Sequence record: NC_019526.1
Strand: one strand, 5' to 3'
Length of the DNA stretch: 64,000 bases
A model generated the notes under the pieces. That model was not told where the DNA came from and searched no databases. It saw nothing but the letters and a program-made list of their open reading frames with translations. The position numbers and the translations under genes were made by a program. Positions 51,701-58,284 of the stretch are shown one piece after another. The number at the start of each line of letters is the position of its first letter. The stretch's first letter is position 1.

Positions 51701-52192
51701 GGAGGCGACTGTATTCAGTACTGAATCAATTGATCGTTGCGTAATCAGATTCAGTTAGCGTAGTATTAGCTGGGACGCGTACTTGTGAGCCGCAACCACA
51801 ACGTACTTAAAATCCAACGCGTGGAGGGTAAGCATTCTGTACTGAATAGCAGAAGGGCTACAAAAACTTATACTTCAAAAAGGTTCGGGAAGTATTCGTA
51901 ATAAACCGTTTAATCGTCTTATCAGTGCTATGAACAACCAATATATTTGTGGTGGATATTATTGGACTCAAGTAGATGATGTTATCTTTGTACGCTTTCT
52001 AACCAAAAGGTCAGATAATAAAAATGTAAGAAAATTTCAGTACTGATAGCTGGAACCTTACTATAGTAAAAAGACCTGATATGACTCGCTTAGGTCTTTA
52101 AATTATATAATGCGAGGGACGCTACGCCTTAGTTTAGGGCTAAATCGTAAGGATTGCGTACTAAACCGCCTTGAGAGTCCCAAGGCAACTTT
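51701..52192 (+). ncRNA. Candidate large multi-pseudoknot ncRNA (~490 nt)
   Basis: GC-enriched, no long ORF; many hairpins; H-type pseudoknot 52070-52116; terminal hairpin followed by a U run. Confidence 0.6.
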
Positions 52193-52302
52193 TAATTTAA
52201 ATGAATTTGTACAAAACACAAAAAGGTGATATAATGATTCTATCTGAAGAAGATTGGGGTGTTTATCCTAAAGACGAATTTGATGGATTTTAATAAAAAA
52301 TC

Positions 52303-52332
52303 TTGAACAAAAACAAAATAATGTGATATAAT
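52303..52332 (+). promoter_or_regulatory. Sigma70-like promoter TTGAAC-18-TATAAT
   Basis: Directly precedes the ncRNA at 52343. Confidence 0.6.
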
Positions 52333-52342
52333 ATTAGCACTT

Positions 52343-52460
52343 AATGAGGATAGGTGCAGTTGGTGAGATACCGCATGAGAAATCATAGACACCGTAGAAA
52401 GCTAAGGGCTTGGTGAGCGACGGCAAAACCCAACCGTAGTAGAAGCTCTAGGAACTCATT
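52343..52460 (+). ncRNA. Candidate structured ncRNA (~118 nt)
   Basis: Closing stem AATGAG/CTCATT; internal GGTG/CACC, ATGA-GAAA-TCAT, ACGG/CCGT. Confidence 0.55.
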
Positions 52461-52486
52461 CAGTACATTTTAATTTAAAGAATTAA

Positions 52487-52574
52487 GGCCGTATGTCCAA
52501 ATTGGTAAAGGAGACAGACTTAAAATCTGTTGGTGATATTCACCTTCTCGATTCGAGTTCGAGTGCGGCTACCA
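52487..52574 (+). tRNA. trnL: tRNA-Leu(TAA)
   Basis: Cloverleaf GGCCGTA/TGCGGCT, anticodon loop CTTAAAA, long variable arm, encoded CCA. Confidence 0.92.
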
Positions 52575-52603
52575 AATCTATAGTACTTCATTAGGTAAAC
52601 AAT

Positions 52604-52927
52604 ATGTGTACTGAAGCAAGAAGATATGTTTATATTTTGGTTCGCAAAGATTTAGAACTAAAGGATATTATTGTTCAAACTGCTCATGCTTCATATGAAA
52701 GTGCAAAAGAATTCAAAAATAATGCTGATAGAACATCTATTATAGTTTTAGAAGTCAAAGACTTATACAAACTAAATGATGCTAAAAGTTATTTAAATTC
52801 TAATGGTATTAATTGGACTGTGTATACTGAAAAATCTTTAGGATTTGGAGAAACTGCTATCAGTACTGAAGCACTCAATAACGAACAACGAAAAATTATG
52901 CGTAAGTTCCAATTATTGAAAGTATAA
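52604..52927 (+). CDS. PTH2-like peptidyl-tRNA hydrolase (second copy)
   Basis: YVYILVRKDL...VQTAHAS...IIVLEV...ETAIST. Confidence 0.7.
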   Translation: MCTEARRYVYILVRKDLELKDIIVQTAHASYESAKEFKNNADRTSIIVLEVKDLYKLNDAKSYLNSNGINWTVYTEKSLGFGETAISTEALNNEQRKIMRKFQLLKV

Positions 52928-52940
52928 ATATAATAACAAA

Positions 52941-53016
52941 GCGGTTATCGTATAAAGGCTATTACCTCGGTTTTCCAAACCGATGATGAGGGTTCGACGT
53001 CCCTCTAACCGCTCCA
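52941..53016 (+). tRNA. trnG: tRNA-Gly(TCC)
   Basis: GCGGTTA/TAACCGC, TCGGT-TTTCCAA-ACCGA, 8-nt T loop, CCA. Confidence 0.92.
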
Positions 53017-53021
53017 AATTC

Positions 53022-53117
53022 AACAGGTAGTAACGCTCTTAGGTGTACATTAATATAGGAATAAGGGTTAACAGTACTGTACACAAACGAGTAACCCCGA
53101 AAGACCCGAAACCTGTT
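53022..53117 (+). ncRNA. Candidate pseudoknotted ncRNA (~96 nt)
   Basis: AACAGGT/ACCTGTT closing stem; crossing helices GTGTAC/GTACAC and GGGTTA/TAACCC. Confidence 0.55.
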
Positions 53118-53127
53118 AAAGTTTTAC

Positions 53128-53177
53128 GGATGATTATAAATCTGAATTGACAGAAACAGCTAAAACTGTTATTATCC
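53128..53177 (+). ncRNA. 50-nt three-way-junction RNA, copy 1
   Basis: GGATGAT-TATAAA-TCTG AATTGA CAGA-AACA GCTAAAAC TGTT-ATTATCC. Confidence 0.75.
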
Positions 53178-53185
53178 TATTTTAT

Positions 53186-53370
53186 TCCACAATCAGACGT
53201 ATATGGTGTAAGTTACGTCGATGAAATCCAGAACAAGATCTCTGGTACTCTAGGAAGTGGTGAATGTTAACCTAGACGGGCTTGTTAATTGGACGATAAG
53301 CAATTAATACTTGACTAGCAGGTTTAAATTAGAGGTGACTGTCCTTCACTATACTGGAAAACCGGATGGA
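53186..53370 (+). ncRNA. Candidate structured ncRNA (~185 nt) with pseudoknot
   Basis: Four hairpins; loop TGGTGAA can pair with TTCACTA at 53345. Confidence 0.5.
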
Positions 53371-53388
53371 TTTTTAATTAAAAAAGTG

Positions 53389-56223: not shown

Positions 56224-56353
56224 TTTGGACAAATCGTACTGAATTAGTACTGTAATAATAGACACTCATTGCTGTAAACTGGAATGCAGTATACAATCCT
56301 TCAGATACAGAGTGTGACAATACGATGTTAAAGGTATCCTTTGACTGTCCAAA
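56224..56353 (+). ncRNA. Candidate structured RNA (~130 nt)
   Basis: TTTGGACA/TGTCCAAA, ATCGTA/TACGAT, ACACTC/GAGTGT, TAAAGG/CCTTTG. Confidence 0.5.
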
Positions 56354-56377
56354 TTAATTTAAATGGAGTACTGAATA

Positions 56378-56578
56378 ATGTCCAAATATGTTAATCGTCA
56401 AAAACGAAAAGCACGTACTAAGGACGAAATTCTACAGTTGATTCAAAAAAATCAAAAAGATGTAGTTATTGAAGAATATATTTTTCAGTACGGTAATCAA
56501 CAATCAATGGTACAAGAAAGTAATGGTAAGTATCATTCTGAACATTACGACCTTATTAAAAGAATTCTTTTGAAATAA
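56378..56578 (+). CDS. Hypothetical protein
   Basis: 66 aa ORF, GGAG RBS. Confidence 0.65.
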   Translation: MSKYVNRQKRKARTKDEILQLIQKNQKDVVIEEYIFQYGNQQSMVQESNGKYHSEHYDLIKRILLK

Positions 56579-56733
56579 ACAATAATACTCATCATCTAAT
56601 ATCAGTACTGATGCGTATCAGCAGGTGGCTTGATGGGCAGTACTGACAGGATACATCGTTCTCCGGTGGCGGGTTCGGTGGATATACGTAAAGTCGTATT
56701 GGGTATACCAAATATAATAATAAAAATATGTAA

Positions 56734-56809
56734 TAATGTGATAGCTCAAATAGGTAGAGCGGGAGGCCAAAGTGCTGACTGGTTTGTGAGTTCGATTCTC
56801 ACCCATTAT
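56734..56809 (+). pseudogene. Degenerate tRNA (anticodon arm not canonical)
   Basis: TAGCTCAAATAGGTAGAGC D arm and GTGAG-TTCGATT-CTCAC T arm intact; acceptor imperfect. Confidence 0.6.
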
Positions 56810-56820
56810 TAATAAAATTG

Positions 56821-56851
56821 TAAGCTACCCTGTTATTTGGGTAGCTTTTTC
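56821..56851 (+). terminator. Rho-independent terminator
   Basis: AAGCTACCC-TGTTATTT-GGGTAGCTT-TTT. Confidence 0.75.
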
Positions 56852-56874
56852 TTTTTATATAACAAGAGATTATT

Positions 56875-57291
56875 ATGAGTAAATTAACTTTACTGAATAT
56901 TTTACAAGAATGCTATGAAAAACTTGAAAATTCCAATCCAAGTGTCATATTCAACTCATCATTTGATAATTATTCTACTTCAAATTATAAAGCAAAAATT
57001 TTAGTATATAATCACTTTGATTTATCATCATTAAGTGATTGTAGTAACATTTACTTACACATTTGTGACTACAATGATGATAGTGGGTATACTATGACGA
57101 TTGATATTTACAAAGGATATTTTTATTATAAAAATAAAAAATTTGACAATTTTGAAAATTTATTCCCATTGACTGAAGATACAATGTTTCAGTACTCAAC
57201 ACTTTATGACACATCCTCCTTGACAATGGATGAGTTAAATTTTATAATGTCTATTAGTTTGGATATTCCAATTTATGAAGCAGCATTATAA
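56875..57291 (+). CDS. FQxS-motif family protein
   Basis: TEDTMFQYSTLYD. Confidence 0.75.
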   Translation: MSKLTLLNILQECYEKLENSNPSVIFNSSFDNYSTSNYKAKILVYNHFDLSSLSDCSNIYLHICDYNDDSGYTMTIDIYKGYFYYKNKKFDNFENLFPLTEDTMFQYSTLYDTSSLTMDELNFIMSISLDIPIYEAAL

Positions 57292-57308
57292 AATCTAGGA
57301 GCATTTTT

Positions 57309-57461
57309 ATGAAAATTAAGTGTTGTGTATGTGATTGTGAAATTGATGAAAAGCATGTATATGGCGAATGGGATGATTACTGCTCTGATTGCTGGGAATC
57401 TGAAGGACGTGATACAGAACGTTGGGAAGATGAGAGCGAGTGGGATGAGGATGAAGAATGA
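57309..57461 (+). CDS. Small acidic zinc-binding protein (50 aa, not in the ORF track)
   Basis: MKIKCCVCDCEIDEKHVYGEWDDYCSDCWESEG...; GGAG RBS. Confidence 0.6.
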   Translation: MKIKCCVCDCEIDEKHVYGEWDDYCSDCWESEGRDTERWEDESEWDEDEE

Positions 57462-57607
57462 AAGACCAAAATTGGTTGGGTTGACCATCAAAAAGTATCA
57501 CTATGTGGTTCAAAGAAAGTCGCAGTAATGATACGGTGGGATATAAGAAGCGTATGTTAGAAGAGTTATCATCAACGTCAAGAAACTAATATTATCACGG
57601 AGAAAGT

Positions 57608-57928
57608 ATGAGTTTAAACATCTGGTACAGTACTGAACCATGTGAACCAAAGTACTTACAAATTTCACATGAAGCTCTTAGTCGTTATGCTAAAAAAACC
57701 AAGAAAGATTTTGATGCATTCCGTACACACATTCATAATCATCATGCCCAACCAGCCACGAAAGATGGTATGTTTGTTTTGGAATCTTTTTTTGGTGGAG
57801 AAGTATTTGATTTAGTAGCTGACTATTTGAAGTCAGAAGGTTATACAGTAAAAGAAGATTATAAAGATCTTGAAGGTGAATGCATCATTGAAGGTTATGA
57901 TGGTATTCTTGTTAACTGGAGTTGGTAA
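57608..57928 (+). CDS. Hypothetical protein
   Basis: 106 aa ORF, GGAG RBS. Confidence 0.75.
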   Translation: MSLNIWYSTEPCEPKYLQISHEALSRYAKKTKKDFDAFRTHIHNHHAQPATKDGMFVLESFFGGEVFDLVADYLKSEGYTVKEDYKDLEGECIIEGYDGILVNWSW

Positions 57929-57942
57929 TGAATAGATTTATA

Positions 57943-58040
57943 GGACATACTGCGGGATCTGTTTTTAAGGCTTAGGTACTTCAGTACTAAAACAATACCT
58001 TAGAAACGGAGTCCAAGTTGAATTCTTGGAATGTCCACCA
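57943..58040 (+). ncRNA. 98-nt tRNA-like RNA (6-bp acceptor + 6-bp T stem, ACCA end)
   Basis: GGACAT/ATGTCC-ACCA; TCCAAG-TTGAATT-CTTGGA; 12-bp central helix. Confidence 0.65.
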
Positions 58041-58044
58041 AATT

Positions 58045-58118
58045 ACCGCCTTAGAACAATTGGTAGTGTAACTTGATTTGTAATCAGTAGGTTATATGTT
58101 CGAGTCAGATAGGTGGCA
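58045..58118 (+). pseudogene. Degenerate tRNA-Thr(TGT)
   Basis: Cloverleaf with TTTGTAA loop but mismatches in the acceptor, D, anticodon and T stems. Confidence 0.65.
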
Positions 58119-58284
58119 CAAATAATAATAGTACTAGTAAGGTTTATTTACAGTTATGGATTCTTCTTTATATTCTAGTACTATTTCGTTTTTTAATAAA
58201 CAATTCAAAACTTTATTTTTTTTAATTTACTTAGGCTGATTCATTGAATCGGCCATTTTCTTTGTTAACAAAAGAGATAAAAAT

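Follow-up and report, generated by a model that had tools for sequence, protein, structure and literature searches.

Stable RNAs other than transfer RNAs (tRNAs) within a phage tRNA cluster are already known from bacteriophage T4, which encodes rnaC (species 1, 139 nucleotides (nt)) and rnaD (species 2, 119 nt). Both RNAs were confirmed by Northern blots, and their function is still unknown (PMC9697503). In the T4 genome the order is tRNA-Arg, rnaD, rnaC, with only a few bases in between, next to the homing endonuclease gene segB. SegB is reported to drive the preferred inheritance of the T4 tRNA region (PMC2330249). Structured RNAs of unknown function, GOLLD and ROOL, have also been described from phages and prophages, "often near tRNA islands" (bioRxiv 10.1101/2024.12.08.627333). 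Here we describe the tRNA region of Klebsiella phage vB_KleM_RaK2 (RaK2; Alcyoneusvirus), a jumbo phage with a genome of 345.8 kilobases (kb), in a stretch of 64,000 nt from sequence record NC_019526.1 (the window). This region (the island, positions 51701-58120) is probably composed of eight tRNA genes interleaved with at least ten independent small-RNA genes that behave as cassettes and whose products would act in trans. Window coordinates are used throughout and equal the record coordinate minus 124000, the island being 100% identical to positions 175701-182120 of the RaK2 record.

The RaK2 modules, designated by letters and listed in Table 1, share with rnaC and rnaD that they are non-tRNA RNAs inside a tRNA cluster, and that they and their homologues sit in, or fill, the gaps between tRNA genes. 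T4 rnaC combines a T-arm-like hairpin with a closing stem, as do modules L, R and P-tRL, and in the T4-like Mosigvirus F27 it is module F that occupies the gap beside tRNA-Arg where T4 has rnaD and rnaC. However, RaK2 has about a dozen such RNAs where T4 has two, and several of the RaK2 modules, unlike the T4 RNAs, belong to families that cross phage families. When rnaC and rnaD were compared with the island and with all the loci by short-word blastn, only a generic T-arm word of 13 nt was shared. The inheritance driven by SegB in T4 fits with the cassette shuffling observed in RaK2-type islands. GOLLD and ROOL, at about 500-800 nt, are larger than the RaK2 modules (50-190 nt) and occur also in prophages, whereas bacterial genomes lack those RaK2 modules that were searched for; Rfam gave no match to either of the two anywhere in the window. 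Canonical tRNAs have acceptor-type closing stems, T-arm-like hairpins or CCA ends in common with modules P-tRL, L, N, R and M, which also lie in the same cluster, but P-tRL lacks the 7-nt anticodon loop and has a loop of variable sequence, O1 shares the four-way topology only, and F, H, O3, P1 and A are not tRNA-shaped. A tRNA-like module within a non-decoding RNA, as in P-tRL, is also present in the bacterial Y RNAs (YrlA), to which no match was found in the window, and in transfer-messenger RNA (tmRNA). The related jumbo phage PA5oct is reported to depend on RNA polymerase of the host and to express several non-coding RNAs (PMC7318152).

The support for the modules is comparative and consists of conservation beyond the genus combined with compensating base-pair changes. 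The original prediction, made from the letters of the sequence, had claimed that most of the longer non-coding stretches can be folded into discrete closed structures, and had named synteny and covariation among relatives as a check. By this check ten module families, A, F, D3 (three copies), H, I1, O1, O2, O3, P1 and P-tRL, are structurally conserved beyond the genus with compensating substitutions, and for them the claim stands, while intervals B, D and Q are unsupported. Folding energy itself did not discriminate, and foldability was dropped as evidence, the sliding-window z-scores being alike in the island and in its coding flanks. At exact module boundaries the z-scores were -4.97 for N, -4.28 for O1, -3.81 for L, -3.02 for R and -2.45 for P1, and two tRNA controls scored -2.5 and -2.2. 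The remaining values (I1 -1.9, A -0.8, B -0.6, Q -0.5, D -0.08, F -0.01, O2 +0.14) include the genuine modules F and A, which are unremarkable by this measure. GNRA hairpins, which had also been predicted, were seen in O1 (two) and adjoining I1, and an H-type pseudoknot was borne out for at least module F. Read on the opposite strand, the conserved G-U pairs (two of them invariant in helix 5 of H, several in D3 and O1) would become A-C mismatches, which points to RNA made from the + strand and not to a DNA element.

Profiles of all ten families gave no match outside the island in the window. Families F, H, O1, O2 and P-tRL together span T4-like, T5-like, N4-like, Vequintavirinae, other jumbo and Cellulophaga phages, and outside RaK2 they often occupy nearly the exact space between two tRNA genes. 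The module RNAs belong to virulent phages. The F, H and N-O3 regions were absent from 5,426 complete E. coli genomes, and the conserved core of H was absent from 185,579 bacterial and archaeal species (one genome each). In scans of IMG/VR only 121Q, RaK2 and Pm5461 came up, together with a single further contig (L133) to which the H profile gave no match. When the island DNA of RaK2 is compared with that of the Asteriusvirus jumbo phages infecting E. coli, similarity is almost confined to the tRNAs, the promoters, the HNH endonuclease gene and the modules. Conservation among members of the genus is 100% for F, D3, K1 and the tRNAs but reaches only 90-98% in the adjoining open reading frames (ORFs).

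A query comprising module F and the first copy of D3 (53017-53183) matched 56 phage records. In the alignment 90% of the cells of its 18 pairs are paired, as against 29-44% in slid controls, and 11 of the 18 pairs are compensated, a result matched by none of 500 shuffles. The closing stem and hairpin S1 change in sequence in nearly every lineage with pairing kept, and the pseudoknot helix S2 (GGGTTA with TAACCC) is 94% paired with one compensated pair. In Mosigvirus F27 the module occupies positions 1189-1286 between flanking tRNAs that end at 1187 and start at 1288. It likewise lies between tRNA-Glu and tRNA-Ile in the T5-like Proteus phage 1, and between tRNA-Gly and tRNA-Glu in the Vequintavirinae Erwinia phage pEp_SNUABM_01, and is also present in the Erwinia jumbo phage Hallingskeid and in Cellulophaga phage Nekkels_2. 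In five Alcyoneusvirus relatives conservation of F is 100%. The tRNA features deposited for E. coli phage F27 (locus L144) lie on the strand opposite to the ARAGORN calls and are displaced in position.

For module H a model with closing helix P0 and six hairpins (P1-P6) was built by hand. It comprises 44 pairs, with 97% of the cells paired (27-40% when slid), and 13 of the 44 are changed on both sides, again matched by none of 500 shuffles. In this model no pairs are assigned to the most conserved part of H, which lies between P4 and P5. Identity is about 80-95% in Asteriusvirus. At 82-92% identity H is also found in T4-like Bragavirus and related phages (Shigella SdyM_006, Proteus Pm5461 and PM2, Morganella Mm5) and in the T5-like Novosibvirus, and it fills, to within a few bases, the tRNA-Gly/tRNA-Asp gap of Bragavirus and the tRNA-Leu/tRNA-Ser gap of Novosibvirus. 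A 16-nt H pattern run over metagenomes gave 113 loci, all but three of which were chance occurrences according to a profile check; one divergent metagenomic copy is located directly after tRNA-Glu in a cluster of nine tRNAs. A link between H and the anti-Shine-Dalgarno sequence was considered and dropped, the motif not being kept in this divergent copy. The deposited tRNA features of Morganella phage vB_Mm5 (L014) are on the strand opposite to that given by ARAGORN.

The interval 56061-56361 contains three cassettes, O1, O2 and O3. Module O1 has two compensated pairs. Its homologue in Asteriusvirus 121Q (87% identity) takes up the gap between tRNA-Met and tRNA-Asn; O1 is missing at that position in PBECO4, and in phage Hallingskeid it is found directly upstream of tRNA-Leu in the order O2, O1, tRNA-Leu. 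Homologues of O2 occur in the Yersinia jumbo phage fHe-Yen9-04 and in Erwinia pEp_SNUABM_01, where O2 abuts tRNA-Arg, and the order in Cronus is tRNA-Ser, O2, P-tRL. Four pairs of O2 are compensated, the RaK2 copy being the outlier of the family. The homologues of O3 (72% identity, eight compensated pairs) and P1 (79% identity, three compensated pairs) each lie in an intergenic gap of Asteriusvirus EJP2, and a weak match to O3 follows tRNA-Asn in Turkey5. P1 shares the interval 56579-56874 with P-tRL and a clean terminator.

Module A is flanked on both sides by copies of the palindrome ATTCAGTACTGAAT and is conserved in five Asteriusvirus loci, there downstream of tRNA-Asn. RNAalifold gave 33 pairs, 11 of them compensated with only two clades available, and in the hairpin at 51719-51757 three of the four inner pairs are compensated. 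I1 is kept in Asteriusvirus, its first part also in 76-kb Kuravirus podophages, and has two compensated pairs in the outer stem and one in the inner helix. The 50-nt element D3 forms a branched stem in which six of 17 pairs are compensated among the RaK2 copies and the Asteriusvirus homologues. In Asteriusvirus seven T in a row come after the stem, in RaK2 the interrupted run AAATTTTAATTT, and D3 looks like a terminator or 3'-end element. Its first copy holds a promoter-like site (TTGACA-17-TATTAT, 53147-53175). Hairpin K1, 100% conserved in five relatives, likely terminates the tRNA-Arg unit or forms its 3'-end element. Of the three unsupported intervals, D varies more among close relatives than any other stretch (84-91% identity), no homologue outside Alcyoneusvirus was obtained in a distant search with B, C and D, and Q is absent from the five Alcyoneusvirus relatives compared.

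The query 56579-56874 matched 85 phage records, mostly through P-tRL alone. The carriers include T4-like Jiaodavirus and Roskildevirus, N4-like Gamaleyavirus and Yersinia TG1. Covariation of the acceptor and T stems of P-tRL extends over four phage lineages, seven of 20 pairs are compensated, and the D-arm and T-loop are near invariant and canonical-looking. The anticodon arm is replaced by a 7-base-pair (bp) stem with an internal loop of GA opposite GA and a variable loop of 5-6 nt, so P-tRL cannot decode. In the records it is inconsistently named tRNA-Cys, tRNA-Thr or tRNA-Gln, or left unannotated, and the homologues are not called by ARAGORN or by the Rfam tRNA model. The possibility that P-tRL is a tmRNA was rejected, ARAGORN finding none and the Rfam match (12.3 bits against a gathering score of 47) covering only a 17-nt T-arm. 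Upstream of P-tRL the N4-like phage PBM-2 has an unannotated stretch of 680 nt (L139:18-696) with a sub-threshold match to permuted tmRNA (32.7 bits against a gathering score of 47).

Modules L, N and R, with CCA or ACCA ends, are further tRNA-like RNAs. L and R have 3' ends similar to the tRNA-Met 3' end (repeat family D6), and the last 10 nt of N are shared with tRNA-Ser(tga). None of 200 shuffles of N folds as well as the native sequence. R has a long arm, and its T-arm-like hairpin with a 7-nt loop is stacked on the acceptor-like stem of 6 bp. The support for these three is purely thermodynamic (z -3.0 to -5.0), and they are restricted to RaK2 and one to three close relatives: L was found only in RaK2, K64-1 and OU509535, and R only in RaK2 and phiKp_21, a distant search giving no homologue outside the genus. 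Module M, a truncated chimera of two tRNAs, looks like a decay product. Degenerate tRNAs, two of which had been predicted, do exist in the island in the form of M and the tRNA-like P-tRL, and L, N and R add to them. For P-tRL, L, M, N, R and O1 there was neither an ARAGORN call nor an Rfam tRNA match at E values up to 10. Eight tRNAs (Leu, Gly, Arg, two Ser, Met, Asn and Thr), one more than originally counted, are called by both ARAGORN and Rfam. With Rfam 15 the gathering score was reached by tRNA alone in the whole window, and at E values up to 10 nothing credible beyond tRNAs was seen over 51400-58400.

A repeated promoter sequence occurs five times in the window, where 0.08 matches are expected, and four of the five lie within 53386-54654. 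The family consists of TTGAAC, a spacer of 16-17 nt and TATAAT, mostly with an upstream TG, and is essentially confined to the island. Near-identical copies precede I1, tRNA-Arg and both tRNA-Ser genes, and related ones precede tRNA-Leu and tRNA-Met. A promoter scan (spacing of 16-18 nt) gave five sigma-70-type sites scoring 10 of 12, four of them with TG; the weaker family member upstream of tRNA-Met is not listed by the scan. The prediction that several of the RNAs have dedicated sigma-70 promoters is thereby confirmed at the sequence level. The putative promoter upstream of I1 is missing at this position in Asteriusvirus, where H abuts I1. The predicted units end in D3, K1 or plain terminators, a G+C-rich stem followed directly by a T-run being found at 56822-56847, 52168-52186 and 58234-58254.

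CCA followed by an AT-rich trailer is found directly after three tRNAs, and also directly after the closing stems of D3, K1, O3 and R. The AT-rich motif AATTTTAATTTAA, originally regarded as a spacer, is indeed locally enriched, with five of its seven matches in the window in 52188-54839 and all on the + strand, but these sequences are better read as 3' trailers, that is, processing or termination sites after closing stems and often after CCA. In E. coli tRNA maturation CCA plus trailer is the layout expected for endonucleolytic cleavage of the trailer followed by trimming. A role of AATTTTAATTTAA as promoter UP element was set aside, since the motif is present where no promoter follows (52466, 53560; a variant at 56350), and for the same reason the 3' trailer reading is preferred.

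Table 1. Features of the RaK2 tRNA island (window coordinates).
Feature	Position	Strand	Remarks
A, ~170-nt structured RNA	51697..51872	+	just past ORF215 stop
Interval B	52112..52190	+	unsupported as structured RNA; terminator-like hairpin 52168-52186
Predicted sigma-70-type promoter	52303..52332	+	TTGAAC, 18-nt spacer, TATAAT with TG; upstream of D and tRNA-Leu
Interval D, leader of tRNA-Leu	52339..52470	+	unsupported as structured RNA
tRNA-Leu(taa)	52487..52574	+	ARAGORN, Rfam
ORF216, PTH2-like (peptidyl-tRNA hydrolase family)	52604..52927	+	Pfam PF01981, 27.2 bits vs curated cut-off 23
tRNA-Gly(tcc)	52941..53016	+	ARAGORN, Rfam
F, ~96-nt pseudoknotted RNA	53022..53117	+	7-bp closing stem, hairpin S1, pseudoknot helix S2
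D3 copy 1	53128..53177	+	Y-shaped three-way junction, terminator-like; repeat family D3
H, 189-nt RNA	53184..53372	+	closing helix P0 and six hairpins P1-P6
Predicted promoter, repeated family	53389..53417	+	upstream of I1
I1	53432..53499	+	long irregular hairpin 53432-53483, then GAAA-loop hairpin 53490-53499
D3 copy 2	53509..53558	+	then AAATTTTAATTTAA; repeat family D3
Predicted promoter, repeated family	54264..54291	+	upstream of tRNA-Arg
tRNA-Arg(tct)	54303..54376	+	ARAGORN, Rfam
K1, simple hairpin	54388..54410	+	then AATTTTAATTTAA; read from sequence
Predicted promoter, repeated family	54432..54460	+	upstream of tRNA-Ser(gct)
tRNA-Ser(gct)	54529..54617	+	ARAGORN, Rfam
Predicted promoter, repeated family	54639..54667	+	upstream of tRNA-Ser(tga)
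tRNA-Ser(tga)	54680..54767	+	ARAGORN, Rfam
D3 copy 3	54776..54825	+	then AAATTTTAATTTAA; repeat family D3
Predicted promoter, weaker family member	54847..54875	+	TTGACA and degenerate -10; upstream of tRNA-Met; repeat families D1, D4
tRNA-Met(cat)	54885..54962	+	without intron in RaK2; ARAGORN, Rfam
HNH homing endonuclease gene	54982..55689	+	annotation; PHROG 14913, E = 2.7e-68
tRNA-Asn(gtt)	55699..55772	+	ARAGORN, Rfam
L, ~147-nt RNA	55790..55936	+	7-bp closing stem, then CCA; repeat family D6
M, truncated chimeric tRNA remnant	55945..55998	+	tRNA-Asn acceptor ends, tRNA-Arg-like D-arm
N, three-way junction	56001..56067	+	7-bp acceptor-like stem, two tetraloop hairpins, ACCA end
O1, 76-nt four-way junction	56070..56145	+	7-bp closing stem, three hairpins, two with GNRA-type loops
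O2, long hairpin	56157..56221	+	5' GGGG pairs with CCCC, then GCCA
O3, ~130-nt RNA	56224..56353	+	terminal stem TTTGGACA with TGTCCAAA, then AT-rich trailer
P1, ~122-nt multi-hairpin RNA	56585..56706	+	two internal CAGTACTG copies pair together
P-tRL, non-decoding tRNA-like RNA	56734..56808	+	overlaps annotated ORF222
Intrinsic terminator	56822..56847	+	9-bp stem, then T-run
Interval Q	57462..57607	+	unsupported as structured RNA
R, tRNA-like RNA ending ACCA	57943..58040	+	directly upstream of tRNA-Thr
tRNA-Thr(tgt), low-scoring	58045..58119	+	ARAGORN; Rfam 34.4 bits vs gathering score 29

The RNA structures, their conservation, the tRNA-adjacent placement and the promoter family are observations, and on these we propose the following model. 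RNA genes of 50-190 nt would each evolve as a cassette in the manner of a tRNA gene, with its own fold and a place next to tRNAs, and would be exchanged between unrelated virulent phages, probably aided by the homing endonucleases of the same clusters. The host RNA polymerase would transcribe the units from the near-identical, presumably strong sigma-70-type promoters, and D3 and K1 would serve as the 3'-end or terminator elements that close individual units. Release from multi-gene transcripts would most likely proceed through the tRNA-maturation machinery, with RNase P acting at the 5' ends of adjoining tRNAs, cleavage in the AU-rich trailers, and trimming back to the stem or to the encoded CCA. 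The products would be stable RNAs that act in trans. One group, the tRNA mimics, may engage tRNA-binding proteins and would comprise L, N, O2 and R, with acceptor-like stems and CCA ends, and P-tRL, the body of which is compatible with an L-shape and has no decoding loop. The second group (F, H, O1, O3, P1 and A) would have compact folds of its own.

Several points weigh against this model. Sliding 100-nt folding z-scores over 49-61 kb do not separate the island from its coding flanks, and several of the alignments contain three or four sequences from two clades and hence few independent compensating events. The lineage-restricted L, N and R could be decaying tRNAs, and the RaK2 copy of O2, with four broken pairs, is perhaps itself a decay product. 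The high identity of H across phage families (82-92%) could reflect recent transfer and not long-term selection. Window-wide, the enrichment of AATTTTAATTTAA is modest (seven matches against 2.7 expected, four of 100 shuffles reaching seven). B, D and Q are without support as RNAs and have to be dropped, and transcription, processing route, stability and action in trans are all predictions from sequence. The original view of the region as an arsenal of small RNAs rather than spacer DNA therefore applies to most intervals, on the strength of cross-family conservation, covariation and cassette placement, and fails for B, D and Q; M and probably the O2 copy of RaK2 look like decay products.

The tRNA-like features in particular agree with an explanation already raised by the original prediction, namely a counter-defence kit, in which CCA-ended tRNA-like RNAs and a non-decoding mimic are decoys for, or inhibitors of, systems that cut or modify tRNAs, and phage tRNAs replace those that have been damaged. 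Phage tRNAs reportedly protect against anticodon nucleases, PARIS and a retron system. The acceptor-like stems with encoded CCA in L, N, O2 and R, the combination in P-tRL of tRNA-like D- and T-arms and a covarying acceptor stem with a variable loop that is no anticodon loop, the gene for a PTH2-like peptidyl-tRNA hydrolase between tRNA-Leu and tRNA-Gly, and the restriction of the families to virulent phages are all compatible with such a role, which on this circumstantial evidence is a plausible and reasonable, if tentative, hypothesis. However, F, H, O1, O3, P1 and A are unlike tRNA, and decoys leave the strict conservation of the unpaired stretches in H and F unexplained; as an account of the island as a whole we regard it as doubtful. 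It is unlikely that the modules are purely cis-acting punctuation, i.e. processing, termination or stability signals of mixed tRNA/mRNA transcripts with no function of their own. D3 and K1 do stand at unit ends ahead of the next promoter, D3 with its seven-T run in Asteriusvirus, and modules adjoin tRNAs and AU-rich trailers; yet F, H, O1, O2 and P-tRL are self-contained cassettes found between differing tRNA pairs with unrelated flanks, and their loops and junctions are conserved beyond the needs of a stem signal.

Genomic debris, in the sense of decaying tRNA genes and scars of homing endonucleases without selected function, could account for the truncated chimera M, the broken pairs of O2 in RaK2, the narrow distribution of L, N and R, the variable content next to HNH genes among close relatives, and the group I intron in the tRNA-Met of relatives. 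This explanation is refuted for the ten modules the helices of which are kept by compensating substitutions, and it does not agree with the conservation of F from enterobacterial to Cellulophaga phages, or of F, D3 and K1 at 100% in relatives in which adjoining ORFs are only 90-98% conserved; for the island in general it is improbable. We attach very little credence to the remaining explanation, that the modules are small protein genes or DNA-level arrays of protein-binding sites instead of RNAs. The records do contain short coding sequences (CDSs) over modules (ORF220w, ORF222, 121Q gene 129, Hallingskeid CDS0230), and the genome-wide DNA motif CAGTACTG is present in A, F and P1, but ORF220w and ORF222 match no PHROG or Pfam family, the substitutions come as base-paired couples, and the G-U pairs are strand-specific.

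Beyond the reading of the modules as independent RNA genes, it is conceivable, albeit speculative, that a portable small-RNA toolkit travels with the tRNA genes of many virulent phage families, some of its tRNA mimics neutralising or hijacking tRNA-binding host proteins including tRNA-targeting defences, and F and H, given the strict conservation of their unpaired cores and their pseudoknotted or multi-helix folds, representing new catalytic or ligand- or protein-binding RNA classes. If this were true, the puzzle of rnaC and rnaD in T4 would be one instance of a general system. The phenomenon known from T4 is much broader in any case, with about a dozen cassettes in one phage and at least five families (F, H, O1, O2 and P-tRL) common to several phage families, among them phages that infect Bacteroidota, and all of them are absent from Rfam. 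In public records the modules are often unannotated, hidden under short CDS calls or, as for P-tRL, given inconsistent tRNA names, and their recognition would improve the annotation of phages, including those considered for Klebsiella therapy. With defined boundaries and folds supported by covariation, the modules can be used directly for expression and structure studies, and they are concrete candidates for phage RNAs that interact with the tRNA and translation machinery of the host.

The palindrome CAGTACTG occurs 35 times in the window against 0.44 expected, mostly in coding regions and often as TTCAGTACTGA (example sites are 1784, 7476, 51716, 54653, 56603 and 56638), and AGTACT occurs 151 times. 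Its copies in the island lie within the spacers of promoters, and in modules A and P1 they form helices. On the whole it looks like a motif of the DNA itself, present genome-wide.

Ten short CDSs are annotated in this region of the RaK2 record, five of which are backed by PHROG or Pfam models (ORF216, ORF218, the HNH endonuclease, ORF223 and ORF225). Only two protein homologues of ORF216 were found, the one with 93% identity bearing the same precomputed Pfam hit, and a comparison with PDB sequences gave no significant match; in Muenster and KP13-7 an HNH endonuclease gene holds the slot of ORF216. CDSs for hypothetical proteins cover RNA modules N-O2, P1/P-tRL, H/I1 and O2/O1, in RaK2 at 55978-56163 (- strand) and 56633-56812 (+ strand) (ORF220w and ORF222), and elsewhere as 121Q gene 129, ELP-22 genes 0527/0528 and Hallingskeid CDS0230. 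These are probably false gene calls. A strong Shine-Dalgarno-like AAGGTGA, overlapping a promoter-like -10 (52208-52235), stands in front of an ORF of 19 codons at 52234-52293; the site could be a micro-peptide gene or just a promoter.

The RaK2 HNH gene is present in some close relatives and absent from others, and the content around HNH genes likewise differs between them. A block comprising Q, ORF225, R and tRNA-Thr (57463-58219) is found in RaK2 and phiKp_21 only, the other Alcyoneusvirus genomes compared having a short junction in its place. When all ORFs of the relatives were compared with the non-coding intervals of RaK2 by tblastn, there were no pseudogene remnants of HNH genes or of the 157-aa ORF described below, only noise from near-identical relatives. 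Phage Muenster has a group I intron just after the tRNA-Met anticodon (L002:5999-6247; Rfam RF00028, 104 bits, E = 6.5e-28), and both this intron and the split tRNA-Met are unannotated. The same model, which does detect the Muenster intron, gave no match in the RaK2 island, and in KP13-7 and RCIP0023 the alignment breaks at tRNA-Met as in Muenster. Upstream of tRNA-Leu, K64-1 (L003:3286-3881) and also Muenster, KP13-7 and RCIP0023 have an insertion of about 600 nt with a 157-aa ORF that has no Pfam match. Flanking this insertion are direct repeats of 103 nt that correspond to RaK2 52383-52485, the second copy being about 90% identical, and the arrangement looks like the footprint of a mobile gene or of recombination.

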